Shown here piece by piece: positions 4,429 through 48,729 of a stretch of 64,000 nucleotides of DNA. The stretch's first letter is position 1. Every line of letters begins with the position of its first letter. The notes under the pieces were generated by a model that saw only the letters and a program-made list of their open reading frames with translations, was not told the DNA's origin and made no database searches. The position numbers were made by a program, and so were the translations under genes. Source of the DNA: Zygnema circumcarinatum SAG 698-1b (taxonomy: Eukaryota > Plantae > Zygnematophyceae); NCBI GenBank assembly GCA_037447605.1, contig CM074805.1, forward strand, positions 2,637,361 through 2,701,360, written 5' to 3'.

Positions 4429-5411
4429 ACAAGATAAGTGGGGTTGGGTGCGAGACGCCGAGCTAGTCAGCAGGCCGACGGCTACCGTCCGGCATTTTAA
4501 AACCGACACGGCGGTCGGGCTGGTACGTGGATCCGCCGCAAAGATGAGCCGTGATCCTGGGATCGTGAGGTACGCCAGCAAATTTTAAGACGCAGGGATT
4601 CCGGCGATGCCCCCACCGCGTCGGACTCGACGCGAAAGAGCCCTTCCCTTGGGGCTCTCCCTCCCCGCCCCTTCCCCAGTCTCTTAGCCAGGGCTTCTAG
4701 CTAATATCGTCATTAAAGAGGAAATGTAAGGCGTGATGTAATCAAGATGGTAGCTTCGCATAGTGACTAAAGAATGGTAAAACAGCACCAACTTAGGATA
4801 AAGGCTGTATTTTGAAAGTCACCCCAGCCAAGTTGGTCAGGGATACCATTACAATGAAAGGATCTTCTCATCAAATCTTGTCTAGTCATTGAATGGGACG
4901 CCTAAATGCTAATGCTAAGAAGACTCTTCTCTCTATCTACGGCATGGGACTCTCTCTCTCTCTCACACTTAGCATCTGTTGCTGGAACTGAAGAGGAAGA
5001 AGAGAAGAACAAGACAACAAACCACACAGCAAATACAAATACTAAGCCCAGCACTAAAAGACAAACTAGCATCACTGACATCCCATCTACTTAGCGCTGA
5101 CAATAGATCTTGAGCCTTAGCAGTTGATAAATTCCCCTGATAATAACCTACCACCCGAAAGGGCCTCCTCGGGACCGGACGCGGAGCCTTTCTGGACAGT
5201 CAACCGGCGACAATCGCATGGTATTTTAAGGGCGCTTTCCGTACTGGATGGTGTGTTGCCCGTGGCTGCCAACATGGCCGCTTTCTCGCATTTTCCCCGC
5301 TTCAAGAACTCCCGATTATGCCGCCGTCCGCGAGCATCAACAATACGTAATATTGCTAAAAGATAACCGAATCTGGACAGCGATCCGTCAGAAGGCCGTT
5401 CTACGCTTACA
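4429..5411 (-). repeat. Family A 3' LTR (LTR-a)
   Basis: Runs from ACAAGATAAGTGGGGTT to CTACGCTTACA on the plus strand. Homologous to the LTRs at 11943, 13408, 18903, 20331 and 47746. Confidence 0.8.
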
Positions 5412-5829
5412 TCGCGAAGCATTGGCGCCTGGGAAAATACACGCACTGGGCGCAAAGCAATGTGAAGAAGAGAGACAAAGGGCGTGGAGGAGCCAAATGG
5501 ATGACGGACGGAGTAAGCAGCTGCGGTCGTGGTGGGAGAATCTTCTCCATATTCTGCAAGAATGGGAGTATCTACAGGACCGGAGGCGAGGAGGGAGTAA
5601 GACAAATTAAAATCGAAGGGATCTGGCCACACAAAGCAGAATACGTCGGGCGGCTTAAAAAGTGGCTGAATTAGAAATGGACCAATGAGGGAGTCGCTAC
5701 GGCAGTGGTATAAAGCGAGTAATCGCTGGCCGTCGGGTTGCAACGCCAGCCTATCTGGGAGGAACTGCCGACGCTGGCGGCACAAATGTCGCATCCAGCA
5801 GGAACGCCAGCCGGCGTTTTACTTAGAGT

Positions 5830-8800
5830 CGTGGTTCTCCAAATGACGGCCCAACCCGGACTCCGACCTTTAATCGACACAAACGGCGGCCCAACCACCA
5901 AAGCCCGCTGAGTCGGCTCAAGCGAGACTCTCGAGCCAAATGAGCCGACGCACCTGATTGGGCTGAGAGCAGCCGCCCCAAAGTCAGCGCTAGCCACCGC
6001 GCTGCTCGGTGCGCGGGAGGCCATGTAACCTGGTTTGGGGCCGGAGGGCCGAGTCGGGTTGCGGCTGACCCATCCGGGAGGAGCCGCCATCGTGAGAAGA
6101 GGGGCTCAGCAGAGGAGGTCAAGGGGAATGCTGGGCTTACTACCATGGTGGTTCTCGTAGGGAGCAGAAGCCAGAGTGAGGAATCGCAGGTGTTGTACGC
6201 GAAGACCGGGAGGGATGGTCTTCGCCAGCCCGCTCTCCGCAACGCTGAACGACGCATCCTGACCGTCTGTATGGTAATGCTCGCAGCCCATTCTCGCCAC
6301 TCGAAAGGGGCCAAAGGTGCTGCGGGAATGATGCGAAGTCCCCATGAGCTTGCGGCAAACGCCTCAGATTCGGTGCCAATGTCGTGAGCTGACAGAGTAG
6401 GGAGAGAGTGACGGTGAATGTACGCCGCCGAAAGGGGCAGAGTCGTATCTAACGTTTAGATTTCGTCAGCGCGGAACTTCCACCACTTATGTGGTCTGCC
6501 CACCTGAAGACCTGAATAGCCAGAGGGGTGCCGAAGCCGGGGATGTAAAAGGCGCCGATGTCTAATCTTCGCGACGCCACAGACGGATCTCACCCATCTC
6601 GAGGGCTTGGCGTCGGGGAAGCGTATTGGTCGCTGGCAAATGGGGTGCAAGGTGTTTCGGGATGTACGCTCACACCGCTGCCATGGAGGCCGGGCCAATA
6701 AGCAGGGCTTCCCGCAAAGAAAAGCGCACCATCTTCGCTAAGGTGAAATCCGCTCGGTTGGGGGAATCGTAGCGACGCCCAGAATTTGCGCTGGGGAAAG
6801 GAATGGGGAAGGCTCTGGAAGGTAGAGAATCGGCCCATCATCGACGTAGGAAAGCCCAGCCGGCGGAGCACCAGCCCTCTCTAGATCCGCGGATAAAAGT
6901 GGGGGCAAGGAAGCCGCGACGAAATAAGAGGAGGGAGTCGAATGGACGTCATCGCGCCGGGAAATGGGGAGGAAGTTAAAAGGAGCCACCATCGCCATCC
7001 ATGCGCGAGGAGCTCCTACCTGACCGCATGGGTGGCCGGGTGAAGTCGGTCCCGCCGCCGAAGGAGGTGTGGTGGCCGTGGGCCGGAATATCGGGACAAA
7101 TTTATCCGCTGAATATGACATCACGCAAAGTCTTGATCCGCAATAAAAACTTGTCGAAGAATTTCGTGGTTCAAGAAAGGGTGGGTGGAGGGATGGGTTC
7201 AGAACGTCGGATCGCGACAGCAGGAGGAGCCGACTAGATTGGCGCATCGAGGGCCGTCGTCGCGACGCGACCAATACCACGGATGCAGTGACCTGAGTAC
7301 ATTATACTCCTCCAACTTCATCACCCATCGCAAACTTAAAGGCCCGGAGGGCAAAATGCATAATGTACCAAGTGGGAGGGGTATGTACGGGTCCGGCCGA
7401 CACAATGGTAGTCAGAAGAGCTTGAATCTCGCGCCTGAGATACCGCTGCTCACCTCTAGGGTTGCATTTTGGTCTCGCTCAACAAAACCTCGCGGTATAA
7501 TCGGACGGGTGTTCCCCTATCCGGAATGCTTGATCGCCACGCCCCAGCCTGCCTCGGCTCCGCCATGCCACAATGGTGGGGCAGTGGTGGGCCGAAATTG
7601 GCGCATAAGTGAGCCCGGCGAGGGCACTCTGAGCGCTCGGAAGGCCAAATCTCGCGCCGGCTCCATTCATAGTGGACTCCGTGCTTCTCCAAGGCATGGA
7701 GGGGACGCGCGATAAGGGCATAGCCCTTGATGAACCGGCGATAGAATGAGGTGAGTCCCAAGAAAGACTTGAGCCGAGCGCAGGTCTCCGCGGAATCGCG
7801 CATAAGGTCACCGTCAAATCTTGTCGGAAAGGATGGTTTCGCGCCATCGGCGCCGGTGGCGGTGCGCCCGGTGATGAAAGTTGATCTCCTCATGGCCCCA
7901 TTTGCACTTCTTGGGTGCAATCTTCAAACGCCGCATCGATGAGCCGCGAAGTACTTGGTCAATGTGTCGCAGTGGTGACCAACTTTGCCGCAGGAAGCAT
8001 CATCCACGAAGTAGTTCCGCAGTATAGTACCCACAAGGGTCGTAACACCTGCTGGCCACGCTGGTGAGTCTGGCTGGAATTCTGAGCCCAAAGGGGAAGC
8101 ATAATCGCCCACCGCATCTAAGCGCGGGTCGTATAAGCCCCGCTCTGCAGCCGATCGGCCCGCCGCAGGGGACCGCCAAAAGGACTTCGTGATAAGTTCA
8201 GTGCCGAGAACCATCGTCCGCGGAGACGCCGCGGAGAATCAAATCCACATCCGTAATCGATAAGGATCCCACTATGGCATTAAGTTTCCATAGTCCCAAG
8301 CGCAGTGAAAGGTGTTATCCGCTGGGGCAGAATCTACTGGCTGGCCCAAGGTTCTTTCTCCCGGAAGTTCCATCAACCGGGCAGCCTAATGCTTCATCGA
8401 CCGTCGCCGGCTATCGGCCCGCTGAAGCCGCTGGAAAAGCTTTAGGGAGTCAGTGGTCATCGACGCGAGGCATCCTCGCATCGGCATGTGACGCCAATCA
8501 GCGCAGCTTCCTGTCATGTCAAGTGAATGGCGGCAAAACCAGTGATTTCGGCGCAAAAGACTTCTGGCGTAATCGAGAATGCTTTTGATCGTCCGAGGAC
8601 CGCCGGCCCCAATCGCATTCACCTTCTTCTATCTCCAAACACTCTTCTCAATACCACGGTCTCGCCGCTGGGTCGGAAAGTTCGCAAAATGGTCCCCTAC
8701 AGAAAAGGTCTCCGGCTCTGGCCGCCACGCAGGGTCGGGACCCGGGTGCAGGGAGGGGGAGTCTCGCCTTCGCATCAAAAATTGGCCGATCCATGGAAGA

Positions 8801-9100
8801 ATGGGGTCACCGCATTTGCATACGGATTCGTAGGGAGACCCGCTACCGTAGGGCGGCGTTTGGGGAAGCGAGGTGGGTAAGGGACTCGAGGATGATGGGA
8901 AGAGTACCGTCCCGGCCAAAGCAGATAAGCGAAATTTATACGTAGCAAAGTTGATTTGTGCTCCTATCGCGATGAGCCAATTCGAAAGCCCAAAGAAGAT
9001 ATTAGTGCTCAGCCGGCCGTGGATGACCAAAGATTCGCCTGCCCCATCTCTCGCCTAAGGTCGATGATCACTGCACCGCCAATTCCTTCACATGTATTCC
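5830..9100 (-). pseudogene. Family A pol remnant, copy A1 (PR-RT-RH-INT)
   Basis: Fragmented ORFs, e.g. 8629-9030 protease-like NWLIAIGAQINFAT, 7456-7920 RT thumb, 7199-7405 RNase H end, and 5823-6314 integrase C-terminus. Many frameshifts. Confidence 0.8.
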
Positions 9101-9199
9101 CCTCAACCCCTACGAGCATTTGAAACGGGCTCGAAGGCTTTGTCCAACTTAAATCCCCCGCAACTTTCATCACCGCTTGGATGTAATCAGGCAAAGATA

Positions 9200-11850
9200 G
9201 GGCCCCGTGGTTTATCATGTGGGCCTTGCCGGGATGACCGCTTAGCCATACATCACAGCGACTGCATCGTTGGTGTTGGATCGTGGGGAGGGAGAGATAC
9301 GAATCATGGTAGAGGGATGTATGGGAGAGCTAACTGGGTTCCCGAAGAGGCGCCGTGGCCATGTGGTGGATATCCGCCGTAGGGATGTCCAGGGAGTTGA
9401 ACCGTGGGAGGTCAAGTAGGGCGGCTCTCCGCGACTGCCGCCAGCTTTTTATTTAACTATTCGGGCGCATCGAACTGTACTCGCAGACAATCGCGGGATG
9501 CGTAATGCCCATCTTAGCTCGTTTCCCCTATGAGCCGAAGGAACTATGCGTTTCAATCGTGGATAGCGCCATCTGCTTCTGGGAGTGGGGCACGCATCGC
9601 CGCCAGGTAGAAACGGGCCGTCTGAGGGCGCACGGGAGGCTGACGCAGCATTTCTTCCGCCGCCGGTGCCGCTTCGGCCCGTCGCGTCGCTATGTCGGCT
9701 CCTCCTCATCAGATCATCCGCTTCCTCGTGCATGGATCCCAAGGGATGACCCGTGGAAGGAGGGAGGACGGGAGTTCTCCTGCCTGACAGGGGGGGCGAC
9801 CGGTGGAGCCGCGGCTGCAGGAGCCGGGTGCCGCTGACATTGGCAGGATAGCAAGGTGGACGAAAATGAGGATCGCCAATATTGTGGAGTCTGCTGGGCA
9901 GCGTTGCAATCTCTACGATCCCAAGCCAGCACCTTCTTCAATTGATAGTGATTCGTAATTGCCGCCGTATCGTCACGTAATCCGTAAGCATGGGCGCTGG
10001 CAGCCGATCGTTCTACCCCAATGCGTTTGTCGGGCGAGTGGAGTCCATGGGGCTAGATGTATTAAGGACCGTAGGATGGTATAAGCGGTGAAGGGAGGTG
10101 GAGGGGCAGCTTAAAGGGAGCCGGAGTTCTGGTGTGTGAATAGCCTGAGCATGTCCATGAAGGTGATCTTCGGCAGGAGCTCGCACGCCTCTTCTGCCTT
10201 CTCACTGGAAAGTCTCCCCGATGCACACACCTGCATCATGTCCCGTGATCCGCAGGAGTGTTGTGTCCATGGTCCACAGCCAAGTACCGCTGGATTATGT
10301 GATTCAGGCCGCGTGCAAGCACAAAATGCTCCTCGGAACTCCCCGCCACTGCTATCCGACGGCAAGAATTGGCCTCCCCGTAGCCTTCTTTCTTCGTGTT
10401 CGACTGGAGGCGACCCTGATATCCCGGACGAAACACGGTATGTGAGGACTACCGACGCGCCAATGGGATGCGCCAGATCGCGAGGGTATGGGGAAAGGGG
10501 AAGGCTTTACCGCTACTGGGTTATGTTCAGGCTGCACTACGTGGGCTGCCCTACGCCTGCTGTGGGACGGGTGAAAGTGACGCAGTTTGTTCCTGTAAGA
10601 TGTAATGTAGTGGACTACGCTAACCGCTGGATTTTGTAGTCTTCGTGAACCGGTGAAATGCATCTTGTCGGATCCTAGGCATTCATGTAATGTGGTCGCA
10701 TATGTCTAGTTGGGCTCCCTCTCTTTGATCCTTCTCCAATTCGCTCGCCTTTCTAACAACGCCGGGTATCTGGCCGGTGGGTTGTCACAAGAACTAATGA
10801 TCCAGTGGAGATCCTCCTCGGCCATGGCCTTATGTCCATCGAGAACTTCGAAAGTCGCAGTTCTCGATCAGATTACGGCGCATCGTAAAACGCTCAAGAA
10901 TTCAAATACCGCCATCATCAGCACTCTCGCGGGTACCAGCGCCGATTGATCCGGGAATCCGCTGTCTCAAAGTCAGCTTGAATGTGTCCTTGTCGTGGTG
11001 CCGACGACATCCGCGAAGCGCTGACAGCCTTCCGCCACCGCCTCTCCTTCCAAATACCGGTAAGGGCCGCCTTGATCCACCTGGGCTTCCCTTCAAGTTC
11101 CCGCTTATGCCGCTTTCTCCTCAAGATAAACCACCAGGCTTCTCGATCTTCCCCGCTTAAGCCGAATCCTCTGGTGACATGCCCGTGGTATCTTCTACCT
11201 CACTCTTCTTTTCGTGAATCACGGCTATTCGCCGGTCATCATCTCTTCCATCTTGCCGGAAACCGTGATCCGACACGCGGTGTTTCTCCTCGCAGTCAGG
11301 CGGAAGTCGGAGAGGGTCCTTATGTATCGCCCCGCCTCGCCTCGAAGCCGGCCCTGGGCCGCCGGGGATGAGTAAGTTGTGAACGCCGGAGCGGGGTCTT
11401 CGAGGAATCCCTTGCTCGTCAGAAAATCGCGTGTCAGCCGGTGCAGGTTTGGCAAATTCCTGGTGCGTAGCTTATCCCGACATTAGATCCCCGCGGGTTC
11501 TCGCTCTCCGTGGGCCGCGCTGGGACCTCGCTTTAACGTACCTCTCTTCACGACCGCGTCGTGATGTGCTGGACCGCAGGTCGCAGCTTGATCATCCGGG
11601 CGCAGTATATTGCCGTGGGGCCGGAAGTTTATGGCCATCACGCTTAGACAGAGTCGCCGTAGCTTCTTCAATCGACTCGACCGCCAAGGTAAGCCGCACG
11701 GGCTAAGGGCTCCTCGTGAGGCTCCATCTTCACTTCCGACCGCTTTTCCTTCCGAATCAACTGGGCCTCGACTACCGCCTGCTCTTCTTGAGGTCCCACG
11801 TTTCATTCAATACTCATGGAAGATCTCGCTTGTCCTCTTTGCTGCTCTTC
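9200..11850 (-). pseudogene. Family A gag remnant, copy A1
   Basis: Homologous to 16570-18850 and 45262-47727. A degenerate CX2CX4HX4C knuckle lies near 10220-10265, followed by a Pro-rich region. Confidence 0.55.
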
Positions 11851-11942
11851 ATTCATGGCGGCCGTGACACGGGGTCGTCGATCTTAAAATTTCACGGCAT
11901 CGGGCGTGCACGCGCGGATCTCAAACCCCGTGTCCTATACCA

Positions 11943-12931
11943 AGATAAGTGGGGTTAAAAGGAGATTGCCGAAAGGTTGTGCCGCAGGCGCTGCACGCAC
12001 AAGGTCTGCGGCCGAAAACCTGGCGAAGGGTTGGGTTGGTGCTGGTGGACTGCCTCGCGCGATAAAGCTGTGATCCGGGATTCGGGGAGGTACGCCGCAG
12101 GCCGGAACGAGGGATCCCGGCGATGTTCCCACCTACGGCCGTGGACTCGACAAAGAAAGAGCCCCTTCCTGGGGGCTCTCCTCCCCTCGCCCCTCCCTCG
12201 CTAGTCTCTACCTATAGGGGCTTCTATTACGTTGGTCATTGGAGGCAGTCGTAAGGCGTGATAGAACAAGATGGTAGCTTGGCATAGTGACTCGTATATG
12301 AAAGGTAAAACAAGACTCAACTTAGATAAAGGCTGGGATTGATGCCAGCTGGCTATCGGGATAGTCATTACAATGAAAGGATCTTCTCACCTAAATCTTT
12401 GTCTAGGCTGGGCTGAATGGGACGTCTAAATGCTATCAACAAGAAGACTCTCTCTCTTCACCTATGGCATGGACTCTCTCTCTCTCTCTCACACTTAAAG
12501 ATTCAAGGTTGAACTCAGAGGTTATTAGGGCAAGAGAAGAACAAGACAACAAACCACACAAAGAAATACAAATACTAAGCCCAAAGACTAAAAGACAAAC
12601 TAGTACACGACATCCCATCTACTTAGCCGACAATAGATCTTGAGTCAGCAAAGATACTCGACGCCAACCGCCCACCGAGTGGCCTCCTGACTGACCGCTG
12701 TGGAGCCTTCTGGATAGGTCAACTCCATGACAATCGGGCGGCATTTTGCGGCGCTTCCGAAAGTGCCTTACCGGATGGCGCGTTGCGGTCGCTGGGCTGC
12801 CAACACACGGCGTCAGCCAGATTTTCGTCGCAACCTCGGATTATGCCGTCCGCGGACATCAATAATACGCATATGTCAAGTACAACCGAATCCGACGCTG
12901 ATCCGGCTGAAGCGCCGCCTCCGCTACTACA
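11943..12931 (-). repeat. Family A 5' LTR (LTR-b)
   Basis: Abuts the PBS-like sequence on its left and ends CCGCTACTACA on the plus strand. Confidence 0.8.
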
Positions 12932-13407
12932 CTCCACTTATCTTGTGCTGGCTAATCGCGACGGGCCAAGAGAAAATAAGACGCGTAGTACGGGTTAAGC
13001 ATTTAATGGTAATGAGTCGTGATTTAATAGTACTCGGCCAACACAAAGTTACCTACGTGCTGGGTGGTTTCCGCGAAAACGGGCCAATTTCGGGGACGAC
13101 TTTTAGTTGCAGGAAAATATGACGGGTCTTACCGCATCAACACACATAAGCTGTAAGTCTCGCCATATGCCTTTCCACCGGTTTCTAAGAAATACCGGCT
13201 AAAAATATTGTTTTGGCAAATGAAGGTCCGCTATACCAATAGGCGAAATTTAACGATGTTAGTGTTTATGTCCGTCAGACGATCGTGATCGTGATCGTGC
13301 ATGTTGTCATATCGCATCAGACGGCCTACCAGAGGGTCATGCATGCTACGGATAGTACCGTGATCTGAACGATCAGATCGTGACGGGCCAAAAAGAAATG
13401 GAGAAGC
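12932..13407. repeat. Spacer Y1 between family A copies
   Basis: Starts CTCCACTTATCTTGTGCT, the inverted copy of the LTR end. Contains opposed GGAAAATATGACG and CATAT..TTTCCACC motifs. Homologous to 19865-20330. Confidence 0.75.
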
Positions 13408-14288
13408 TGTAGCACAAGAGATAAGGGGTTAAAGTAGACCGCCAGCCAGCTTAGCAGCCAGGATGCTACCGCCCGGCCAGGTTTAAACCGGATGAAGGGC
13501 CGGGCTGGTGCCGGGTCTCATGCGCATGAGCCGTGATCCGGGATTTAGAGGTATCGCCAGCCGAAGACGTAGTGGATCCCAAGATGTTCCCACCGCAAGG
13601 CCGGACTCGAGCAAGCAAAGAGCCTCTTCTCTTGGGGCTCTCCTCCCCGCCCTCCTACTAGTCTCTAAATGCAGGCTTCTAGTTATCATATTACGCTGAA
13701 AGAGGAATGAAAGTGATAACAGATATGGCTTCGGCATAAGGATGTTTGAAAGGAAAACAGACTCAACTTAGATAATGGTGGTATTTTTGAAACTCTCACC
13801 CTGTACCAAATGTTGGTCAGATAGTCATCACAATGAAAGTATCTTCACCTAAATCTTTGTCTAGCCGATCAATGGGACGCCTAAACAAGTATCACAGTTG
13901 TAAGACCTTTTTCTCTCTCTCTATCTACGCATGGAACTCTCTTCTCTCACACTTAGCATCCTGTTGTCACCAAGAGGAAGAAGAGAAGAACAAGACAACA
14001 AACCACACAAGAATTACAAATACTAAGCCCAAAGACTAAAAGACAACAAGCATCACCGCATATCCCATCTACTTAACATCGATAATAGATTTTGAGTTTT
14101 AGCAAAGGATGGGGCCCCCTCGATACAATCAGCCCATCGAGAGGCCCGACTACACTACTTTGGGCCTTTCGACAGTCCGCCACGCATAATCGGGCGTGCA
14201 TTTGGCGGCGTATCGGGATGGGGTGCCGCTCGCGGGCCGCCAACACATGGCGCCGTATCCGGGCTTGAAATTCCCGGATTATGCCGCC

Positions 14289-14388
14289 NNNNNNNNNNNN
14301 NNNNNNNNNNNNNNNNNNNNNNNNNNNNNNNNNNNNNNNNNNNNNNNNNNNNNNNNNNNNNNNNNNNNNNNNNNNNNNNNNNNNNNNN
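14289..14388. other. Assembly gap (100 N); other 10-N gaps at 16561, 32312, 33842, 35237, 36179
   Basis: N runs in the sequence. Confidence 1.
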
Positions 14389-15878
14389 CGTAGGGAGAGA
14401 AGCGGTGGAGGAGTGAGCAGAGGTGTTATGCGTGAACCGGGGAGGGATGACCTGGCGCCCGATCCGCCTCGACTCAGCGCGGCAGCGAGCATACGCATCG
14501 CTTGACGTCTGTATGAGTACGTTACGCAGCCCGATACGCCCGCGGGAGTAGGGGCTAAAGGTGTTGATGGATGTCTGGAAGTCACGCATGAGCTTGGCAA
14601 ACGCCCCCTTGTATTCGGTGCCATTGTCAGAGTGGACAGAGTAGGGGAGAGAGTGACGGTGAATGATGGCCGTCAGGAGGCGGGCAGAGTGGACTGAATG
14701 CTTAGATTCTGTCGCGTGAACTTCCACCACTTGGTGTATCTGTCCACGGCTAAGAAGACCCGAATGTAGCCAGAGGGGGTGCCGAGCAGGGGGATAGAAA
14801 AGGTGTCGATGTTCCAATCTTACTGCCGGTGACGCCGGCGTGTGGGATCTCCACCCATCTCGAGGGCTTGGCCCGGTGGGGAGGCGAGGCGCTTGCAGCG
14901 TTAGCGTGAGATGCCGGGTTTTGATGTAGCGGCTCACGCGCCATGGGCCAGGAGCCAATGGCCAGCTCTGCGGCAGGCGACCATCTTCTATACGGCCAAG
15001 AGTGGAATCCGCCCGGTGCAGAATAGATGATAAGCGTCGAATTTCCATCATTTCGTTGGGGAAAGGAAACGAGGAAGGCGGAGGAGGTAAGAATCTGTCG
15101 CCATCATCAGCGAAGTTCAGCGAACAGCGAACTCGGTATCCGTGATAAAAGAGGCGGCGTCACGAGTCGCGGCGTAAGCCTTGAAGAAGAGTCGAGAATG
15201 GACGTCATTGGCGCTGGGGAAATGGGGAGGAAGAAAGGGAGCTTCGCCATCGTCATCCATGAGGAGTTCCCACGGATCCGCATGGGGGTGGCCGTGGGTG
15301 AAGTCAGGGTCCTGCCAGCGATGGAGGGTGGTGGCCGTGGCCGGAATATCGATCAGCCCATCCGCGAATATGACATCATGCAGGTCTTGATCGGCAATAA
15401 AAATCTCAATGGGAAGATGCTTAGGTTCAAGAGGGTGGGTGGAGGATGGGTTCGAGGAGCGGCGGGATCGTGGCGAGGAGGGAGCGGCCGGATTGCGGCC
15501 CCGGGCCGTCGGCATTGCCGTGTCACGGCGGGATGGTGTGACCTTGAGTACAGTATACTCCTCAAACTTCACCATCACCCATCGTCTGGAAACTTAGGTG
15601 GGAGGGTAGCCATAATGTCAGAGCTAAGTGAGGGGAGCATGTGGGTCAGTCCAGAATGACAATGGTACAGTAGGCTGTAAGAGCTTGAACTTCTCAAATT
15701 CTTGAGAGGATGGCGGCCTCACCCTCAGTAGAACATGCCCAGTCTCGGTTTTAGGAACAAAGAAACCCTGCTACTAGCATAGCGGCCAGATTGTTCCCCA
15801 TCCAGAGAATGCTTGGCCCCTTTGCCCAAAAGCCCGTCGACTCCAGTCGGCGTGTCAGTAATGGTGGGCGGGGTGGGG

Positions 15879-35236: not shown

Positions 35237-35574
35237 NNNNNNNNNNGCGCCGCGTCGCGGCGCGCGCCGTGGAATGCGGTAAGCGTTCGTACGTTGTACA
35301 CCTCTGACCCATTCGGGTCAGAGAGGGACACGTGGCAGTCTGCCATTGGACAGCCCTGCTTCCAATCCTCCATGCTGGTAGGAGGTTCGACGGGGGAAGC
35401 GTAAAGGGGCGTGGGTGACTGTCGTCACCCAACCAACGTACCGGCATTCGGTTGCACCCCTGCCCGGGGCTGCGCTACCCTCTGAAGCTCTCTCTCTCTT
35501 GCTCTCTCTCGCTGAACTCTGAGTGCTGGTGTGTGATTCCGCGCAGGCTGAAGAGGCGGTTTTCAGTCGTTACA

Positions 35575-38700: not shown

Positions 38701-39069
38701 AACTTAACCCTCAAGTACTTTCATTATCGGCTGTGGATGTAACTGCGCGATAGCTCGTGGTTTCATCATGGCTTTGCTGATGACCGTTCGTACCATACAT
38801 TGACAATAATTCGCGACGCTGGGTGTTGGGATCGAGGGAGATCTGACCGCGCGAGGAGGATGGCGGGAGAGCTAACCGGGTCCGAGGAGGCGCCGTGTCA
38901 TGTGGTGTATGCGTTCTGGCCGGGCGAGGGATGTCCTGAGGAGGTGCCATGGTAACCGTGGGAGGCCGCAGGGTGGCCTCGGCACTGTCGGCCAGCTTGT
39001 GAACTACGGCTGCAGCACCTGGAACCAGTTGCATCAACTGTGACAAGGTAATGCCGATCTTAGCCTTGT

Positions 39070-42000
39070 TGTTAGTGTTAGTGTATGATAGTTAGACATT
39101 GTATGGCACACACTAACTTGTTGTGGTACTCAGTTTGTAGAACATGAGATCTGCTAGGCGTAGTGCTCTTAGATTTAGGAATGTCGATTGCTCACGACTC
39201 GGTGAGTCATAGCGAGAGTCGCATGAATTACAAGCGGCGGCGTGATTGGGCCTTGGCCGACACATGTCGCGCGAGGAGAGCGAGGACGGCGCCTTTGACC
39301 AGTAAGCGGCGCTTGGCCTTGGCTTAGCGGAAGCGCAAGGATTTAGCGGCGGCGGAAGCGACGCCAAGATATTTGTGGCGAACGGGAATGCGCCACGTGG
39401 ACCACTCGCGTGTAGGTCCAGCGAGTTGGAAGTGTGCGGCGAGGATGGCGGGCGAAGCTTTGAGGAAGGAGCTGGCCAGCAGCGGCCCAGCTATGCAGGG
39501 CGGGTATGCGGCGACAGAACTGGAGTGTGGCCGTGTGGGTTTCTGGCGGCCCCAGCACGGTCGCTATTCACTGATGCGCCCACTCGGGCGGTGCATGGGT
39601 TTGCAATGGCGGGCCGGCGTGACATGTGTGTCGATCACGGTACTCACTTATTATATAGTGCATAGTTTGTGTATAGAGTAACCCACCCACACTACTTTGT
39701 CATAGTCTGGGTCTTGATACGTACCGCTTTCGTCTTTTGCTAGGCTGCCTACACTTGTGTAATGAGTGGTAGTGAGTGGCGAAATGGTAGGAAATTTCAT
39801 TGTGGGAAGAGCAGTTTTATTATAAGGAGTTTTAGGCCGTGAGCTTTCTCTAACACTCTCTCATTGTGATTTCAGTGCTTGTCTTGTAACTTCATTAAAT
39901 TTGTTATGAAGATGAGTGAAGTAAGATAGAGCTTTGAGTGTTGAATGTCTTCATCATTGGGAACTCAGGATTCCAATGGGCGACACACCCAGGTGGCGCG
40001 GAGTGAGGAGCAAACCCCTGCTTCAACAGAGTGGTATCGAAGGCAAGGTGGCGAGAAGACCCGTGAAGTTCAACATCCATCTTGATTCCGGACTACAAGG
40101 GGTGGAGATGGCCATTTGGTTCCCTTTACTCGTGGGCAAAGAGTACATTGAGAATGCGTTAGCCCGGCACCATCAAAGGCACGGTGCAGCGAGGAGCCTG
40201 GCGGAGAGAGCGGCGGTCGGAGTTAAAACCACATTTCGCCCAGATGGAGGACCAAGGACAACAAGGCCCTCACCCAGATCGTCATGAGCGTGAGGGGAAG
40301 TCCCTCTTCCATGCTGTATGACCTTAAGACTTCACATGCTATGTGGAGATGCTTAGAGGAGATGTATGATGTAAAGGATAGCGTAGCGATAGTCAGCCTT
40401 TACAGCGGCTTGGGAAAAATGAAGATGTCTCGGAAGAGAATATGGTCAGATTTGATACTCTAATGGAGAGATTTATAAGCTATTTTGCCAAAAGCAGTTA
40501 GAGGAGACCATAAAATGACTGATTTAGGGGACTGCAGCCGATTTGATGTAGCAGTTGGAGCTCTTAGGACTGTTCTAACGAACACCGTGATGACCCTTGA
40601 GCAAGTGAAACGGAGGATCAAGGAGGAGAACACTGTCCAAGACGTTGGAGGCACCGAGGAGAAGGTGTTGGCGCTGCACTCACGACAAGTTCGAAGAGGA
40701 GGTCGCGCCGAGAAGCGGGAACCGTGGGAACGCCTAGCGAGGGCGTGTTACGTCGCGGCAAGGCGAGACACTTCTCGGCGGTACGAGAACAAGAACACCC
40801 AAGATCGGGGTGGAGGAGCATCGTCATCCGTCAAGAAGGGATTCAGGGGAATCTGCTTTAAATGCAAGAAGCGAGGCCAAAGAGCATAGATTGCAAAGTG
40901 GCGGTGGAGACGAATCTCATGCTGACTGAACATTCTGATTTTGTTGGGAAGATCCAGGTTACGGATCTGAAGCGGCCATGGCTGATCGACTTTGGCGCTT
41001 CCACGCACATGTGTGGCGACAAGCGAATGTTCTCTACGCTGGACACCTTGGAGAGGACCAGATCTGTTCACTCGGCAACCGGAGAGGGAGTGACAGTTAC
41101 AAAAGGAGGTGTAGTAAAGGTAGTCCACTGGGAGCGGCTCTATCATCTCTGAGAAGAAAGAAGAAAAGCGGTTATTACATTGGTGGCGTACTTCATACTC
41201 GACTGAAAGCAGAACTTCGTAATACGTTAGTCAAGTATGTAAGAGAAGTCTGAGAATCACCTTTAAGGAGAAGTCTTGCGTAGCTACTCACTTAGAGTCG
41301 GGGAAGCGGTTGTTTGAGGGGTACGAGAAGGGAGGCCTGTATTACCTTCATTATAGGAGAGAAGAAAATGAGGGTGTAATGGCCGTAACTTAGGGTGCAG
41401 TAAATCTTTGGCATCGTAGACTTGGTCATCTAAACCACAGGGGACTGCAACAGCTTGCTGCAAGGGGGCTGGTCCACGGGTTAGACATTGACGTGGTTGA
41501 GAAGGAGCTAGGCTTTTGCAAAGAGTGTGTAGAGGGGAAAGCGCACAGGAGACCTTTCTCGAGGAGTGGAGAGGAGTCATTTCACGCGCAAGAGAAACTG
41601 GAATTGGTTCATACCGATTTGTGTGGACCCGTGACACCGGCAACGAGTGGAGGAGCTCGCTACTTCATCACCTTCCTCGACGATTTTTCGAGGAAAATTT
41701 GGGTGAAAATTCTCAAGTACAAATCACGGAAGCTTTGAGACGTTGGAAGATTAGCGGGAACTTCGAATGGGCGGCGGTGGCGAAACGCTGCTGGGACAGG
41801 GAATTCAGGTCGAAGGAGTTGGCGGGTACTTGAGCTCGCCCGGAATAAGGCATGAATTTTCTGCTCCTTACTCCCCTCAAAGTAGCCATTTGAGAGGGTC
41901 AATAGGGCCAGTGGGGGACATGTACGGACCTGTCTTGATAGATTCCCCTTCAGGCATCCTTTTTGGGGGCGGTGATGACCGCTGCCGTAGATGCCCATCT

Positions 42001-45000
42001 TACATTGCTTAAAGTCGAGGTTCTACGAAGAGGTGTGGAGTGGGAGAAACCCACGGTGTCCACACGAAGACCTTTAGGCCTTCTTGGTCAGCGATCTTTG
42101 AAAGCGGCGAAGTTCGACCCCGAGCGTGGAAGGTACCTTCGGCTACAACATTCGCACCTACCGGGTGTGGAACCTCCGAGCAAGCGAAGGCCGAGCTTCA
42201 GAGAGGCGTTCTGATGGGCGAGAGGCGGTGACTCGGCTAGGTGAGACCCGCGCACCCCAAAGGCCGAGTTGGAAATTATTATGCGAGGATGTGGAACCAG
42301 CAAAAGAAAGCATGGGCACGCCTCTCGGGTCCCGGCCGAGAGGAGAGATCAGCCGCGGCCCGAGGCGAGCGGAGGCTGCTTGCCCGAGCGTGGAAGCGGC
42401 CGCGTGGGAAGTTGAACCCGAGCGCAAAGCGAGAGCCGCAACAACCGGCGGAAGCGGCACCACTACACACTCACACAATACGGCGAGGAGAACTTCGGCA
42501 GCGTACCTTTGCATGGGCGGGGAGTCGAGGTTGGAGGCGAGTGAGAGAGGGTATGTTGTCGAGCATGCCTTTGGGTTTGTCCGGATTTTCTTCAACACGA
42601 GGAGCCGGGCGCCAAGGACGCGGAGGAGCACCGATGTGGTGAGAGCGATCACTACGAGGCCTTGGCGGTTAACCTAGTCACGAGGAAGAGTGCCTCGGAC
42701 TCGGCCGGACCTCATGAAGGGAGCTGCCTTGTTTATGATCACCGAACCGCCAAACCTTTGAGGAAGCGCCGCAGCGGGGCGATGGAGAGAAGTGGCGAGC
42801 ATGTCGGCGGCGAAGTGGAGACGATTTCTTTGGAGAGCGGCACATGGCGACGAGGGCTGGCAGGGGGAAAGGAGGGCCATTGGATGCAAGTGGGTGTTCA
42901 AGGTGAAGCTGGCCGGACGGGGAGTGTGGAGCCACGATACAAAGCGGCTGGTGGCGAGAGGCCCACGACCAGGCGTGCGAGATCGACTACGGAGACCTTA
43001 CGCCCCGTGGTGGTTCAACTCCTCGTGCCCTAATATAGGTGCGGCGGCCGAGGGGATACCCGTACATCAACTCGATATCAAGACTGCGTTTCTGTACGGA
43101 GATCTCGCTGAGGAGATCTACATGGTACAGCCCGAAGGGAAAGTTGTCCCGGGGCAGGAGCATCTCGTTTGTCGTCTTGTGAAAAGAGTTTATGCAATTT
43201 CAAACGAGCGCCAGGATTTGATGCGAAAAATTGACCTCTGAAGAATGCGGATTTCTTGCTTGATTGAGGCGGATCATTCGTGTACCGACAAGGGAAAGCG
43301 GATCTCATATGCGTTAGGATCTGCGTGGGCGACCTCATAATGGTGAGCCTCATTGGAGAATCAATGATTTGAAGCGACTTTTGGAAGCTAACTTCAAAAT
43401 GTATAGGATCTAGGGGCTGATATCTCACAGAATGCGATTGAAGAGGCGGGGCGGTAGCTTACTTATTTCTTTGTGTCCGAGAAGAAGTCACGCCCTTGAA
43501 TATACTTGCAGTTCAAAATGGAGAGTGCGTCGCTTGTTGTCAGATGGAGATAGGAATGCGGTGTCGAGGAATATGATGCGGCAGCAGATCTTGAATTACG
43601 AAGGAATGTCGCGAGAATAAAATCCTGAATCGTGTCGGAGTTTAATAATATCTGATATTAGGTACTTCGTCGACTTGGCAAAAGCCGTGAGCTCGGCAAG
43701 TGGTTCATGGAGAATCCCGGTCTGAACATTGGGAGGCGTGAAGCGGATTTTCAGATTAGATGAAAGGGACCTTGGTCTGATCACCAATTTGAAAGAGGGG
43801 CCAACCACGGTGATGGTGCCGACTCTAATTGGGGAGAGTGATATTGAACCTACGTCACGATCGGCGTCGAGTTGTGTTCTGAGCGGAGGCCGATCTCATG
43901 GAGCTTCGAAGTTACAAGATCACGGTGGCGTCGAGCATAGAAGGAAGTGCAATGGGAGGCGTGCCCGTGCAGCAGAGGATGTGGTTCCAACATTTCTTTG
44001 ATGAATGTAAGCAACCACAAACACCATTGACTCTTTTACGGACAACCCGGTCATCATAGCCCTCATGGAGAACCACATGTTTCATAAGAGAGACGAAACA
44101 CGTTAAGTGCTGTGAAATATCATTATGTCTTGAAGTTGGTAGAGGAAGGGATGATAGTGGTGAAGTTTGTAGGAACAAAAGAGCAGGTTGCAGACATGTT
44201 GACCAAGGGGGTCAGCAGGGAGACACTATTAGTGAACAACAGATTGATTGGGCTAGGGCCCATGAGGAACTGAGTCCCAAGGGGGATTGTTGGTGTTAGT
44301 GTATGATAGTTGGAGCATTGTATAGCCATAGCGCTAAGCTTGTTGTGAGTGCTGGTTGGCCGTTGCATGAGATCTGCTAGGCGTAGTGCTCTTAGATTTA
44401 GGAATGTCGGTGCTTTCATTCCGGTGGAGTCTTGCAGTCTGTGAGGTCTGAGCGGCTTGGCCAATTAGACCTTGTGGCTTAGCATGTCTTGAGAGAACAG
44501 GCCGCGCATAGCTTTGATTAAGTCATGGCCTTGAAGCGCAGCTTAGCGGAAGCACTAAAGTTGCAGCCTTGAAGCGACATAGAAGATATTTGGCGGCGAA
44601 CCGGAATGCGCCACGTGGACCACTCGCAATGTGGGTCAGCGAGGATTGAAATTAATGCGGCGGCGAGGTGTCGGCGGGAAGAGCGGTGGCCCAGCAATGT
44701 ATGCGAGACGAGGGTATGCGAGCGACAGAACTAGGTGTGGCTGCCGTAGGTTCTGAGCAGCTAGCGATGTGATACGAAGTCGCGCCCGCTCCGGGCTTCA
44801 GTCTATGGGAGTTTGCAATGGCGGACGCGACGTGACATGTGTGTCACGTCACGGACGCCATATTATATAGTGCATAGTTTTATTATGGGAAGTAACCCAC
44901 CCACACTACTTTGTCATAGTCTCGGGTCTTATTCTGTGCCTGCTCGTGCTGCTAGGCTGCCTACACTTGTGTCGTGAGGTAGTGAGTGAGAGGGACCTTG

Positions 45001-45256
45001 AAGTAGTGGGAGAACTTCATTGTGGGAAGAGAGTTTTATTATAAGGAGTTTTAGAGCCGTGAGCTTTCTCCTAACACTCTCTCATTGTGATTTCCGCTGT
45101 GCTTGTCTTGTAGCTTCATTCTGTTGTTATGGGCGATGAGTGAAGTAAGATAGAGCTTTGAGTGTTTGAATGTCTTCATCCGTGGGAACTCAAGTTCCAA
45201 TGGAGGGCGACACCCAAGGTGGCGCCGGAAGTGGGGAGCAAACCCCTGCTTCAACA
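39070..45256 (+). mobile_element. Ty1/Copia element D nested in A3 between gag and PR
   Basis: TSD CTTGT at 39065-39069 and 45257-45261. LTRs at 39070-40028 and 44288-45256. PBS-like TGGTATCGAAGGC at 40032-40044; PPT AAGGGGGA at 44279-44286. Confidence 0.95.
40100..44260 (+). pseudogene. Copia gag-pol remnant (gag-PR-INT-RT-RH)
   Basis: GICFKCKKRG knuckle; WLIDFGASTHMCG protease; LWHRRLGH; ELVHTDLCGP...RYFITFLDDFSR integrase; KWVFKVK and HQLDIKTAFLYGDL RT; EQVADMLTKG RNase H. Frameshifted. Confidence 0.9.
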
Positions 45257-45261: not shown

Positions 45262-47727
45262 CTCCCATGAGCTGATGAACCATGCGTCCAATCAAGGATA
45301 GGCCATCTGTCGGGGGGGGTGGTCGTCGGTCGGCTGCCTGGGGGTAGAAACGGGCTGCCCGAGGGCGATGGGGAGGGTTGACGTGCATCTCTTTTGTCGC
45401 TAGTGCTCTCGGCTCTGGCTACGCCGCTGTCGGCTCCTCCTCATTGAGATCGTCAGTTTCCTCCTCAGGCGTGGATCCTAATGGATGACCCGTGGAAGGA
45501 GGGAGGACTGAAGTTCTCCGGACAGGGGTGGCGACCGGTGGAGCCGTGCCAGAGGAGCTGGCGCCGTTGACATCGGCAGGGAGGAATGGCAGGGGATGTG
45601 AATGAGGATCACTTTGGTTGACAGGGAGCCTGCGCAAGGCATTTGCAATCTCGGCGATCCGGGCTTGAGCACCCTCTTCAGAAGTGATGGGGGATTCGGA
45701 CCAAGCCGGTTGTAATGCCGCGACAATCTGGGCAGTGCGTGAGCGGGCAGCAGGATCGGGCTCAGCAGCCAATGCGTTTGTCAGGGAAGGAGAGTCCATG
45801 GGGTGCAGGTGGATGGGCGGACGTTGCAGGATGGTGTAAGCGGGTGAAGTAGGTGGAGGCGGGCGAAATGGAGCCGGAGTTCTCGGTGGTGTGGGAGTAG
45901 CCGGGAGCATATCCATGAAGGTGATCTGCAGGTGAGCTCCTAGCTGGCACGCCTCTTTCCCCTTTAGGGCCCCTTCTCACTTGAGAGTCTCGCATGCACA
46001 CGGGCATAAATGTCCCGTGTCTGGCGAGGAAGAGTCGCAGTCCATAGTCCGCCGCGCCCAACCCGCGGTGCATAATTCAGGCCTTGAGCAAGGCCAGGCA
46101 CGCCCTACGGAACCCCACTGCCTCTACGTCATCGGCCAGTATGAGATCGGCTGGCTCTCTCTCGCCGGTGTCGCGATCCGAATAAGGCCCGATATCTGGG
46201 CGAAACATCTGTTATATGAGGATTCACCGCCCGGCTCAATAGGATGTGCGGGATCGCGAGGTATGGGGAAAGGGGAAGGGGCTTGATGCCGTCTTGGCTA
46301 TAGCGGAGAATTTGCGCCACGGTGACGGGGCGTCTTGGCGAGGATGCGGGCGGCTTGTTCTGCTTGGTGTAGCATAGGGATCGCTGGCTTGCTGATTACG
46401 TGTCGCCGAGGAGCTGGCTGGTAGAGTCGATCTTGTCGTGGATCTGTAGCATTCATGTAATGTGGTCGTACATGTCGGTTGCCTCTCTCTTGATCCTTCT
46501 GAATTCGCTCTGCCCTTTCTAACAAGGCTTTGGGCATCTGGCGGTGGAGTTGTCGTAGCGGCTCAAGATCAGTGGAGATCGCTTCTTCAGCATTGGCCTT
46601 GCGGAACCCTTTGGAGAACCCGGAAAAAGTCGAGGCAAGTTCGATAGTATTTGCAGCGCGCACAAAACGCTTCGATGAACTCAAGCGGCCCGCTCATCAA
46701 CGTAGCATTCTATGTAGCGAAATCGGTCAGTACGATGTCCGGATCCCGAAATCCCGGCGTTGTCTGGCTTGGCAGATATTGTCCCTTTGTCGAATTACCG
46801 GCGACATCCGCTTTGTGCGGTTGGGGCAGCTTCGATTGTGACCTCTCCTTAGCGCTCAAGGGGCGGCTTGATCCCAGCGGTCCTCCTTTGGGAGTGAAGC
46901 TTAGCACCTTCTCCTCAAGGTAATACCGGCCATGCTTAGCATCTTCACGCTTGCCCGGTGAAGCCTCTTGTGATGATACCCGTGGTATCCCTCACCTCCC
47001 TCTTTAAAGGAATCATTGCGCTGCTCGGTTTGGTCATCATCTTCCATCTTGTTGAGGAAGCTGAATCGACTTCGTGTGCTTCTCACTTGAGTTGAGTCTG
47101 CCCCGAAAAGTACAGGAGGTCGCTACTTGATTATCTGCCCTTACTGAAACGCTTCGCTGGTGCGGATCAAATGAGATTGTGAGCGCCCGGAGGTGAGGGT
47201 CGCCGAGGAATCCCCTTATACAACTGTGGGAGTAGCGTGCGTTAGCGTGCTTGAAGGGACTCTGATGCGTGTTATCGGCCGAGCTCCCGTGAGTTCACAC
47301 GTCTGCGGTGGGCGCGGTGAGGACCTCAGGTTGACGGCACTCCTCTTCAGGCATCTGCTGACGTGGCGGCGGCAGGCGCAAGCGATCATCTAGCGTGCAT
47401 ATGCATGGCGGTTTGTGGCCATCCTTTGCCCTAGATAGATGCATTGCTGACTCTTTGTCGACTCACGATCTGCTCAAGGTAAGCCAAACTGGGATAAGGG
47501 TTCTCTTCGGTGATGCCCATCTTCAATCTCTCTCTGACTGCTTCTTCCTCTGCGTCTGAATCCGTCCTTGGATTTCCGATCGCCTGTTCTTCTTGAGGTC
47601 CCAAGTCTTCATCTGAATACTCATGAAGATTTGCTTGTCCCTCTTGTTGCAGCTCTTCATCCATGGCGGCCGTGACCCGTGGTCCGCGGGATGAAGCAAC
47701 CTCACGTATCAGTGCGTGGATGCGCAA
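45262..47727 (-). pseudogene. Family A gag remnant, copy A3
   Basis: Begins just after the PBS (ORF 47431-47727). A degenerate knuckle lies near 46000, followed by Pro-rich ORF 45419-45916 shared with A1 and A2. Confidence 0.6.
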
Positions 47728-48729
47728 AACCTTGACTCGATACCAAGATAAGTGGGGTTAAAGAGGCTGGCGAGGCTAGTTGTAGGTCTTTGTCACGGCC
47801 CTTTCCTTGCGTCAAAGTCTTTGAAGCCCGATGAAAGAGGTTGGGCTGGTCTTTGTGGGTACGCATCGCGACATAGAGCGAGATCCGGGGGATTGAGGAA
47901 GATGCAGCGTGAGCGTGGGATCACGAAGATGTTCCCACGGCGGTGGACTCGTCTTAAGAGCCCTTCCTTGGGGGCTCTCCTCCCCTGTCCTCTCCTCGTG
48001 GTCTCTTAGCTAGGCTTCTAGTTATCATTGGTGTTTAGCAGGGAGGAATGTAGGGGCGAGGATAGAAGCGGGATAGTGGCAGCATGGTGGCGGCAAAGGG
48101 AAGCGAGGACTCAACTTAGATAAAGGTGGTATTTTGAAACTCACCCCAGCCAGCGGTTGGCTGGGGATAGTCATCACAATGATATCTTCTCTTGAAATCT
48201 TTGTGTCTAGGCCAGATGGGGCGTCTAAATGCTATAGGCTGAAGACTCTTTCTCTCTCTCTCTCTCTATCTATGGCATGGAACTCTCTCTCTCTCTCACA
48301 CTTAGCGCCGTTGCGGCGAAGAAGGAAGAGAAAGAACAAGACAACAAACCACACAGCAATTACAAATACTAAGCCCAGCACTAAAAGACAAACAAGCATC
48401 ACTGACATCCCATCTACTTAACACTGACAATAGATCTTGAGCCTTAGCAGTGACAGTCCCTGATTGGCCAACTGCCCACTGAGAGGCCTGACTAACTACT
48501 TGGGGCCTTCTGATAGGTCCGCTGCTGACAATCGGCGGCATTTGGCGGCGCTTCCGAGTGCGCCTAGCTGGATGGTGTGCTGTTCCGTGGGCCGCCAACA
48601 CATGGCGCCGCCTTCTCGCAGTATCCGTCGGCAACTCCTGGATTATGCCGGTCCGTGACACTGAATATGAATATGTCAAGTACGACTGAACGGGCGCGGA
48701 TCCGTCGAACGCAGCTCCGTTACGCTACA

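Follow-up and report, generated by a model that had tools for sequence, protein, structure and literature searches.

The window analysed here, a stretch of 64,000 nucleotides from Zygnema circumcarinatum SAG 698-1b, contains three copies of a Gypsy-type retroelement, family A (A1, A2 and A3), which are three periods of one same-strand array with a period of approximately 9 kb. Read along the minus strand, its parts follow one another in the order f - I - e+X - S - d - I - c+X - S - b - I - a (LTRs a to f, coding internal region I, motif X and spacer S), and the unit repeated in each period is LTR-PBS-internal-LTR+X-spacer S-purine tract-LTR. Two LTR contexts alternate along the array. The 'P' LTRs (b, d and, in part, f) possess a purine tract, formed by the last nucleotides of spacer S, at their start and a putative initiator-tRNA-type PBS at their end, whereas the 'Q' LTRs (a, c and e) are located between the coding internal region and S, are bracketed by motif X, and adjoin neither a PPT nor a PBS.

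All parts of the array lie on the minus strand. LTR a, the 3' LTR of A1 (4432-5411; 'Q'), is followed by the X-like sequence TGTCTTCAC (4423-4431) and preceded by the X-like sequence TGCTTCGCGA. The internal region of A1 (5412-11942) is heavily decayed in its coding content and carries the PBS-like sequence TGGTATAGGACACGGGG at 11926-11942, next to LTR b (11943-12931; 'P'), which has a purine tract at its start, a PBS at its end and no X. A first copy of the spacer (12932-13407) separates b from X (13408-13416) and LTR c ('Q'), which together occupy 13408-14288; the 5' part of c is lost in a gap (14289-14388). The internal region of A2 (14389-18902) has a decayed PBS and adjoins LTR d (18903-19864; 'P'), which has a purine tract before it and no X. 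A second copy of the spacer (19865-20330) leads to X (20331-20339), the core of LTR e (20340-21336) and, directly upstream of this core, the X-like sequence TGTGCTAC (21337-21344), a segment spanning 20331-21344. The internal region of A3 (21345-47745) is interrupted at two places, about 21.4-35.6 kb and 38.7-45.3 kb, where other elements are nested within it; its PBS (TGGTATCGAGTCAAGG, 47730-47745) adjoins LTR f, the 5' LTR of A3 (47746-48729), which possesses neither X nor, upstream, the inverted 21-mer described below. Upstream of f, a rearranged copy of the spacer (48730-49140) combines a direct right part, an inverted middle part and a CCCTAAAA-type run.

A distantly related LTR, A' (3537-4431), was recognized through local alignments on the plus strand, and adjoins LTR a tail to tail. 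It shares about 55-60% identity with family A LTRs (z = 27-64 against f, e, a and b when aligned this way round, compared with about 0 in the opposite orientation), carries its own tail+X-like end, and has a purine-rich tract and S-like fragments (2856-2945 and 3130-3300) upstream.

Coding remnants place family A among the Ty3/Gypsy elements, as the RT is followed by a DDE (rve) integrase. In A2, an RVT_1 match (15879-16529; E 1.5e-23) is accompanied by a weak rve match to the integrase core (14155-15051), and A3 contains RVT_1 (37556-38527), the integrase zinc finger Integrase_H2C2 (36110-36925) and the rve core (35563-36378; E 7e-10). In a scan covering 20 ORFs, no recombinase family, and hence no tyrosine recombinase, was matched, and the family A repeats align as direct LTRs; the earlier note had separated family A from DIRS elements by its DDE integrase. 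Further copies were sought beyond the window. An exhaustive HMMER search with the RT piece of A2 gave best matches of about 44% identity, none of them family A, and a word search with the 323-aa PR/RT ORF yielded generic Gypsy matches of about 40% identity and no family A copies. Metagenome scans returned zero matches for the tail 19-mer, and 17 loci for the 19-mer that is invariant in all LTRs, each of them a chance match of 19-26 nt.

LTR termini and motif X

The tail ...AACCCCACTTATCT is common to all six family A LTRs, and their alignment on the minus strand likewise places TTTAACCCCACTTATCT in six out of six; a search with the LTR-tail motif returned six matches (five exact, the one at c imperfect) against 1.2 expected by chance. 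What follows this tail depends on the position of the LTR. The tails of b and f run directly into a TGGTAT(C/A)G... PBS, which by its resemblance to the plant sequence may be that of initiator tRNA-Met, and the tail of d runs into its decayed counterpart. In c and e the tail continues into TGTGCTACA (motif X, 9-11 nt), and in a it is followed by the decayed X-like 9-mer, an ambiguous extension since it sits exactly between LTR a and A'. LTRs c and e consequently terminate in ...GCTACA (a: decayed and ambiguous), while b, d and f terminate in ...CTTATCT followed by the PBS region. The earlier note had described b and f as ending directly before TGGTAT, d as lacking the extension next to a degenerate PBS, and c and e as extended (c imperfectly), all of which is borne out by the sequence, with X as the extension.

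Motif X completes the terminal inverted repeat TGTAGC...GCTACA of the LTR, and it is absent from all three PBS-adjacent LTRs, even though these diverge by 25-35% and span two LTR groups. The X-like 8-mer upstream of the e core occurs just three times on both strands of the window, and each occurrence borders c or e. The sequence before e, TTTTCTCCCCA-AGA-X, resembles an LTR tail plus X, and a decayed version of X lies upstream of a. The presence of X at c and e and its absence at b, d and f constitute an asymmetry that no canonical route explains.

Family A fails to show the identical TG...CA LTR termini and the 4-6 bp TSD typical of Ty3/Gypsy elements. A check for TSDs, proposed by the earlier note, found none under four boundary definitions (core or 21-mer as the left border, combined with core or X as the right border), and TSDs could have decayed at 20-35% divergence. 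A match of CGCGC with CGCCC at A3 was dropped as a TSD because it is one nucleotide out of register.

An element of another family nested within A3, N2 (39069-45256, plus strand), serves as a canonical control. Its two LTRs (39069-40028 and 44287-45256), with 76% identity between them, are bounded by TG...CA; a GAG spacer precedes the PBS TGGTATCGAAGGCAAGG, and the PPT AAGGGGGA adjoins the 3' LTR. Its PBS, set beside that of b and f, reads TGGTATCGAAGG. Because N2 has kept all these features at a similar divergence, decay is not the cause of the family A anatomy, and we agree with the earlier note that canonical tRNA- and PPT-primed replication of three separate elements does not produce it.

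Spacer S and the purine tracts

The two copies of spacer S (c-b and e-d) show homology over approximately 470 bp. Both this homology and the 8-mer directly upstream of the e core had escaped the earlier note. The body of S is present in Logan contigs of four runs with summed depths in the thousands, which is within the range of much of the LTR; these contigs are 60-100 nt long and the runs hold 5-7% of the words of the stretch, so that they report on abundance and cannot bridge junctions. With such depths, S is an abundant repeat rather than unique flanking sequence.

The right end of S is an inverted version of the LTR tail plus X. It is found at 12932-12949 (extending to 12952, the last 18-21 nt of the first copy, purine-rich) and, as a variant, at 19865-19886, with a chance expectation of 0.01; it lies just upstream of b and d, and not of f, the 5' LTR that has been preserved best, which is preceded by a short CCCTAAAA-type run (48736-48757). 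The window contains the sequence GATAAGTGGAG at just two places, each upstream of a 'P' LTR. The two inverted 21-mers read GTGGAG, whereas each of the six LTR tails would give GTGGGG, and the 21-mer was therefore inherited with S and not recopied from U5. The feature that the earlier note had read as a copy of U5, inverted and joined to the 5' LTR, is hence the conserved right end of S: the copies at b and d are real, but the feature is absent from f and belongs to the spacer.

Together with the tail+X of the preceding LTR, this right end brackets S with a 21-bp inverted repeat. The copy between e and d contains an additional, internal 14-nt inverted repeat (20040-20053 and 20094-20107), and in the copy between c and b the start motif of S reappears at its end. 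S-like pieces also occur in rearranged form and without a preceding LTR (48730-49140 and 2856-3300). S could not be identified as an inverted or decayed piece of an LTR, to none of which it has significant similarity in either orientation, nor as an RNA gene or SINE, since no Rfam family was matched and the tRNA scan found no tRNA gene in the window.

A canonical PPT would abut the 3' LTR. The 20 nt upstream of a and e consist of 45-50% purines (the border of c is lost in the gap), in line with the view of the earlier note that no purine-rich tract precedes the 3' LTRs of A1 and A3; a PPT-like tract adjoins b and d instead, with 70% purines over 20 nt and 75-83% over the last 12 nt. PBS and PPT-like tract consequently flank the same LTRs, b and d (the PBS of d being decayed).

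LTR relationships, age and assembly

A tree built from the final 330 nt of each LTR divides the six into {a,b,c} and {d,e,f}, with 100/98 as support, and thereby places the two LTRs of A2 in different groups, contrary to what a single insertion predicts. LTRs e and f are sisters in the whole-LTR tree (93/95) and in a tree of 420-nt tails (94/96). A simple tandem duplication after LTR divergence predicts that 5' and 3' LTRs group separately, which the trees did not show. The copies are old, since identity within the family A LTR pairs is 74-83% and no coding region is intact. The LTRs of the nested N2, at 76%, are less similar to each other than those of its host pair e-f, at 81%; LTR identities have therefore been distorted by conversion or by differences in rate, and the trees carry less weight in either direction.

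Six gaps are present in the window, and the 5' side of c is the sole LTR junction touched by one of them. Judged by collinearity with A1, gap 14289-14388 hides about 0.13 kb of LTR and 0.84 kb of internal sequence; relative to A1, about 1.36 kb is hidden or deleted at gap 16561-16570 in A2, and gap 36179-36188 hides about 155 nt. The flanking duplicates at gaps 32312-32321 and 33842-33851 are 100% and 99.8% identical, and both gaps look like unmerged overlaps for this reason.

Explanations for the asymmetric LTR ends

The best reading of family A, in our view, is an old composite array that expanded through DNA-level events, starting with a unit that had been rearranged beforehand. We put this reading at slightly less than an even chance; it would explain the greater part of the unusual LTR ends with no need for a novel mode of replication. 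The starting unit would have been rearranged or complex before the array grew; growth and reshuffling may then have proceeded through unequal crossing-over, duplication and local conversion. The same odd junctions would recur in all periods because they were inherited from this one unit. The anatomy, the homology and abundance of S, and the grouping of LTRs by neighbourhood are observed; the succession of these events, and the view that replication involved no special step, are inferred. The array reading is supported by the homologous S copies and the partial, rearranged one upstream of f, by the high copy number of S, by the split into {a,b,c} and {d,e,f}, by the GTGGAG common to the two 21-mers, by the 21-mer missing at f, by the absence of a TSD, by the location of PBS and PPT-like tract on the same LTRs, and by the age of the copies. 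It is also close to an alternative that the earlier note itself had offered, a rearranged ancestor that was then duplicated. Other observations speak against the array reading. The sister relationship of e and f is what one would expect if f-I-e were a genuine single insertion that was asymmetric from the start. As X completes the canonical terminal inverted repeat, it is the LTR with X that resembles a genuine substrate of the integrase, whereas the LTR next to the PBS resembles a truncated form, and the position of X directly upstream of the e core (decayed upstream of a) points to a designed feature rather than an accident. Moreover, the order PPT-LTR-PBS is expected for shared LTRs, but to our knowledge nothing equivalent to the 'Q' LTRs is found among complex elements described so far.

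Several of these observations favour the rival reading that the asymmetry is inherent in the replication of family A, whose 5' LTR would lack X and end at the PBS, X being confined to the 3' LTR. A tail-like module plus X would replace the PPT, and a non-canonical step would add or regenerate the GCTACA terminus, either through priming or templating by this module or by means of RNAs, read-through or composite, in which S is present together with its purine tract. In addition to the terminal repeat completed by X and the sisterhood of e and f, this reading can claim the 8-mer found solely at 'Q' LTR borders (three of three), once within the element just upstream of e, the mirroring of the LTR tail plus X before e, the consistent lack of X from PBS-adjacent LTRs despite their divergence and two groups, and the canonical N2, which indicates that decay alone spares PPT and PBS. 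We nevertheless regard it as rather unlikely. No mechanism could be derived that places X at the right end alone when U5 abuts the PBS; of the reverse-transcription schemes considered by reasoning (a tRNA stub or a plus-strand primer left in place, the junction of a circle, and self-priming from a hairpin), none does so. Every copy seen is part of one array with homologous spacers, TSDs were not found, all copies are dead, the protein and metagenome searches gave no independent copy, and the inverted 21-mer is missing from the unit at f. This last point, together with the GTGGAG shared by the two 21-mers, the abundance of S, and the grouping of LTR tails by neighbourhood across the A2 pair, leaves unsupported the proposal of the earlier note that symmetric 21-bp ends arise through non-canonical priming or through regeneration of the ends.

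A smaller probability attaches to site-specific insertion of family A at one position of an abundant, perhaps tandem, S repeat, an alternative already raised by the earlier note. The inverted tail+X that terminates S, perhaps along with the X where S begins, would then be target sequence resembling the element's own end. S-like sequence precedes b, d, f and the related A', that is, every LTR with a 5' purine tract or S, and S follows c and e at the same homologous position; S is a high-copy sequence, and its start motif recurs at the end of one copy as in tandem monomers. This reading is weakened by X within the element upstream of e, by the LTR terminal inverted repeat that needs X, by the missing TSDs, and by the uniform orientation of three elements at a proposed target that is palindromic. 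No empty S-S junction was seen, and a single contig that joins an LTR end to a variant of S (20031->20330) rests on 19-26 matching letters, too short to be trusted. Slightly less probable again is a composite replicating unit, in which LTRs would separate a PBS-bearing coding module from a PPT-bearing S module, the direct and inverted 21-nt tail+X would regenerate or equalize the ends recognized by the integrase, much like the internal complementary region of DIRS elements, and 5' and 3' LTRs would be born different. An origin of the array, or of its junctions, in faulty assembly (repeats that were collapsed or made chimeric, or mis-scaffolding) is very improbable; the six gaps, two of them with duplicated flanks, attest to an imperfect assembly at this locus, but the LTRs and S copies diverge by 20-35%, each junction is distinct and no product of collapse, and gap contact is limited to the 5' border of c.

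Arrays whose elements share LTRs have been documented as complex elements (Sabot & Schulman 2007; PMC1950507) and for the Cassandra TRIM (PMC7215508). Family A resembles them in that successive internal domains alternate with LTRs on the same strand, that the PPT-like tract and PBS flank b and d, and that LTR kinship, in the tail tree, is unlike that of independent insertions and fits recombination within arrays (the whole-LTR trees pair e with f). It differs from them because two kinds of segment alternate, a coding region that has a PBS and lacks a PPT, and S, 470 bp long, in which a PPT-like tract is present and a PBS is absent, because every second LTR is bracketed by a 9-nt motif rather than by PPT and PBS, and because no TSD surrounds the whole array.

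Should the array reading be true, the locus would be a worked case of recombination turning retrotransposons and a companion repeat into a higher-order repeat; that such arrays can mimic 'impossible' LTR structures would matter for automated TE annotation and bear on LTR-based dating in algal genomes. If the asymmetry were instead born at each insertion, it would represent an undescribed way to make LTR ends in an integrase-bearing retroelement.

With canonical Ty3/Gypsy elements such as N2, family A shares the order of RT and integrase, an integrase of the DDE type that includes an H2C2 zinc finger, LTRs that begin with TG and measure about 1 kb, and a putative PBS beginning TGGTATCGA; it departs from them in the PBS-adjacent LTR without terminal ...GCTACA, the lack of a purine tract before the post-integrase LTR, and the absence of a detectable TSD. 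A short internal or flanking sequence complementary to the element terminus is reminiscent of DIRS elements, from which family A is set apart by its DDE integrase, its direct LTRs, and a 21-mer that f lacks and that acts like a component of the spacer. The LTR-S-LTR segment, finally, recalls a TRIM or LARD in its short non-coding internal domain and the PPT-like tract adjoining the downstream LTR, but S starts with X rather than with a TGG-type tRNA PBS, and its pieces also occur rearranged without a preceding LTR.

Copies, internal regions and gaps of family A

Self-comparison of the window placed the ~1-kb LTR of family A, a decayed Gypsy-type retrotransposon, in six minus-strand copies: a (4432-5411), b (11943-12931), c (13417-14288, cut by a gap), d (18903-19864), e (20340-21336) and f (47746-48729). 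They bound the elements A1 (b to a), A2 (d to c) and A3 (f to e), with b, d and f as PBS-adjacent 5' LTRs and a, c and e as 3' LTRs. Identity within the LTR pairs is only 74-83% (BLAST). The three internal regions between the LTRs are homologous, with every reading frame broken, and on the minus strand they still carry RT ahead of an H2C2 zinc finger and a DDE integrase core, the domain order of Ty3/Gypsy elements. Nested insertions add ~20 kb to A3; two repeat pairs there (25877-27373/30474-31955 and 22294-22575/35280-35564), each ~93% identical, probably represent the LTR pairs of younger nested insertions, and the gap at 35237-35246 cuts the outer pair.

Judged by collinearity with A1, the 100-N gap at 14289-14388 hides the 5'-most ~0.13 kb of LTR c together with ~0.84 kb of internal region, and that at 16561-16570 hides ~1.36 kb, unless these stretches were deleted; the gap at 36179-36188 conceals ~155 nt. 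Two further gaps, at 32312-32321 and 33842-33851, each lie between duplicates (682 bp, 100% identity, and 547 bp, 99.8% identity, respectively) that look like contig overlaps within a nested insertion, left unmerged in scaffolding. The stretch 31628-33010 plus 33295-34397 is thus probably ~1.2 kb too long in the assembly.

Asymmetric LTR ends and the control element

An alignment of the LTRs and their flanks revealed the tail TTTAACCCCACTTATCT in all six copies; the motif has eight matches in the window against 1.2 expected, including the six LTR tails (five exact, that of c imperfect). Directly past the tail, TGGTAT(A/C)G... follows in b and f, a decayed version of this region in d, TGTGCTACA (the motif X) in c and e, and TGTCTTCAC in a. 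The asymmetry of the LTR ends asserted in an earlier note on this DNA is thus confirmed at the level of individual letters. The X-type extension that it gave for the 3' LTRs c and e holds; such an extension is ambiguous at a, where the 9-mer sits between a and an inverted distant LTR relative, A' (3537-4431, plus strand; alignments to four family-A LTRs give z = 27-64, and only in this orientation). The end of A', ...CAGCCTCCCACCTCGTGAAGACA, aligns with the family-A tail plus X, and since A' and a lie in opposite orientations and abut tail to tail, the one 9-mer that separates them may be part of either.

X is found to the right of c and e, and TGTGCTAC also directly to the left of e (21337-21344); across both strands of the 64-kb window, this 8-mer has only three occurrences, all of them at these borders. 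Upstream of e, the sequence reads TTTTCTCCCCA-AGA-X, similar to the LTR tail plus X, and a decayed version of X flanks a on either side. With X, an LTR has a complete TGTAGC...GCTACA terminal inverted repeat; hence, the X-bearing LTR looks like the proper substrate of the integrase, and the PBS-adjacent LTRs seem to lack nine nucleotides. In canonical reverse transcription, the U5 of the PBS-adjacent LTR is copied into both LTRs, a process that therefore cannot place X on a single side. Four other schemes were reasoned through (retention of a tRNA stub or of a plus-strand primer, a circle junction, and hairpin priming), and none of them fits a one-sided X. No target-site duplication was detected for any pairing of a left border (LTR core or inverted 21-mer) with a right border (core or X).

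The claim that a PPT is missing before the 3' LTRs applies to a and e, where the 20 nt upstream are 45-50% purine; the 5' border of c is lost in the 100-N gap. The 20 nt upstream of b and d are 70% purine, and the last 12 nt 75-83%.

With LTRs that have diverged to the same extent as in family A, the nested element N2 (39069-45256, plus strand), of a different Gypsy-type family, served as a control. Its LTRs still have TG...CA ends, its PBS, TGGTATCGAAGGCAAGG, comes after a GAG spacer, and the PPT AAGGGGGA directly adjoins the 3' LTR; consequently, decay alone does not explain the family-A junctions. The sequence TGGTATCGA, common to N2 and b/f, supports reading the sites at b and f as PBSs, with a putative match to plant initiator tRNA-Met. 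N2 must be younger than its host, although its LTRs are 76% identical and those of the host pair e-f 81%, so that LTR identity is an unreliable clock here; conversion or uneven mutation has distorted these values.

The spacer repeat and its inverted 21-mer

The c-b spacer (12932-13407) and the e-d spacer (19865-20330) are homologous over their full length, forming a ~470-bp repeat, S. The letters reported in the earlier note stand; this homology had been missed. A partial, rearranged S lies upstream of f, with its right part direct and its middle part inverted, and further S fragments (2856-3300; one direct, one inverted), together with a purine tract, precede A'; S hence occurs alongside the LTRs of at least two related families. 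In neither orientation is S significantly similar to the LTR, and it matches no Rfam family and no tRNA. In Logan contigs of four runs from one study, which are too short to bridge the junctions, the summed depth of the S body runs into the thousands, about as high as for much of the LTR; S is thus an abundant genomic repeat and not a unique flank. Internal inverted repeats are present within S (20040-20107); upstream of f, the flipped middle part (48807-49038) and an exact 30-nt direct repeat (48853-48882 and 49038-49067) suggest inversion by recombination between internal repeats.

Inverted copies of tail plus X, reported earlier as an inverted U5 copy fused to the 5' LTR, do occur upstream of b (12932-12952) and d (19865-19886); f has none, and its upstream flank carries S-like sequence and a short run of the CCCTAAAA type. 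Both 21-mers read ...GATAAGTGGAG; this 11-mer has no other occurrence in the window, and all six LTR tails would instead yield ...GTGGGG. This shared derived state indicates that the two 21-mers descend from each other as part of S and were not recopied from the adjacent element. Together with the absence of a copy at f, it argues against the earlier proposal that end regeneration builds symmetric 21-bp ends. At f, ~2.5 units of CCCTAAAA(A) (48736-48757, minus strand), the C-rich strand of the Chlamydomonas-type telomere repeat, lie between the S-like sequence and the LTR start, a few bases upstream of it, in the place of the purine 21-mer at b and d.

Array order and competing readings

Read along the minus strand, the array runs f - I - e+X - S - d - I - c+X - S - b - I - a (I, coding internal region), with two alternating LTR contexts. 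At b and d, the purine-rich end of S abuts the LTR start and the PBS abuts its end, as in the PPT-LTR-PBS junction of shared LTRs known from complex or tandem arrays (PMC1950507; PMC7215508). We tentatively favor an old composite array: its periods would all owe their odd junctions to one ancestor unit, itself rearranged or complex. A non-canonical structure of the family as a whole, for which the one-sided X and the intact junctions of N2 might speak, appears rather unlikely to us; protein searches and metagenome scans reached no family-A copies outside the window. Site-specific insertion into S, for which the abundance of S and its presence beside related LTRs might speak, is more doubtful still. 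An assembly artefact is highly improbable; the 5' border of c is the sole LTR border touched by any gap.

The LTR trees bear on how such a composite array might have arisen. The last 330 nt separate {a,b,c} from {d,e,f} (support 100/98), which puts the two LTRs of A2 in different groups. Three independent insertions do not fit this split, and a simple tandem duplication after divergence of the 5' and 3' LTRs predicts b, d and f versus a, c and e, contrary to this tree. The topology does agree with the reshaping of an array, either through unequal crossing-over within the internal region or through local conversion. However, e and f pair in the whole-LTR tree (93/95) and the 420-nt tail tree (94/96), as expected of a true LTR pair, which speaks against reshaping. 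With the identity of N2 below that of e-f, distorted identities give the LTR trees limited weight. Every family-A LTR also carries (GA)n microsatellites, either one or two per copy and variable in length (e.g., 12470-12490, 20890-20910 and 48255-48300), adjoining the most conserved LTR block, GGTTTGTTGTCTTGTTCTT, which is invariant in all six copies and also present in A'.
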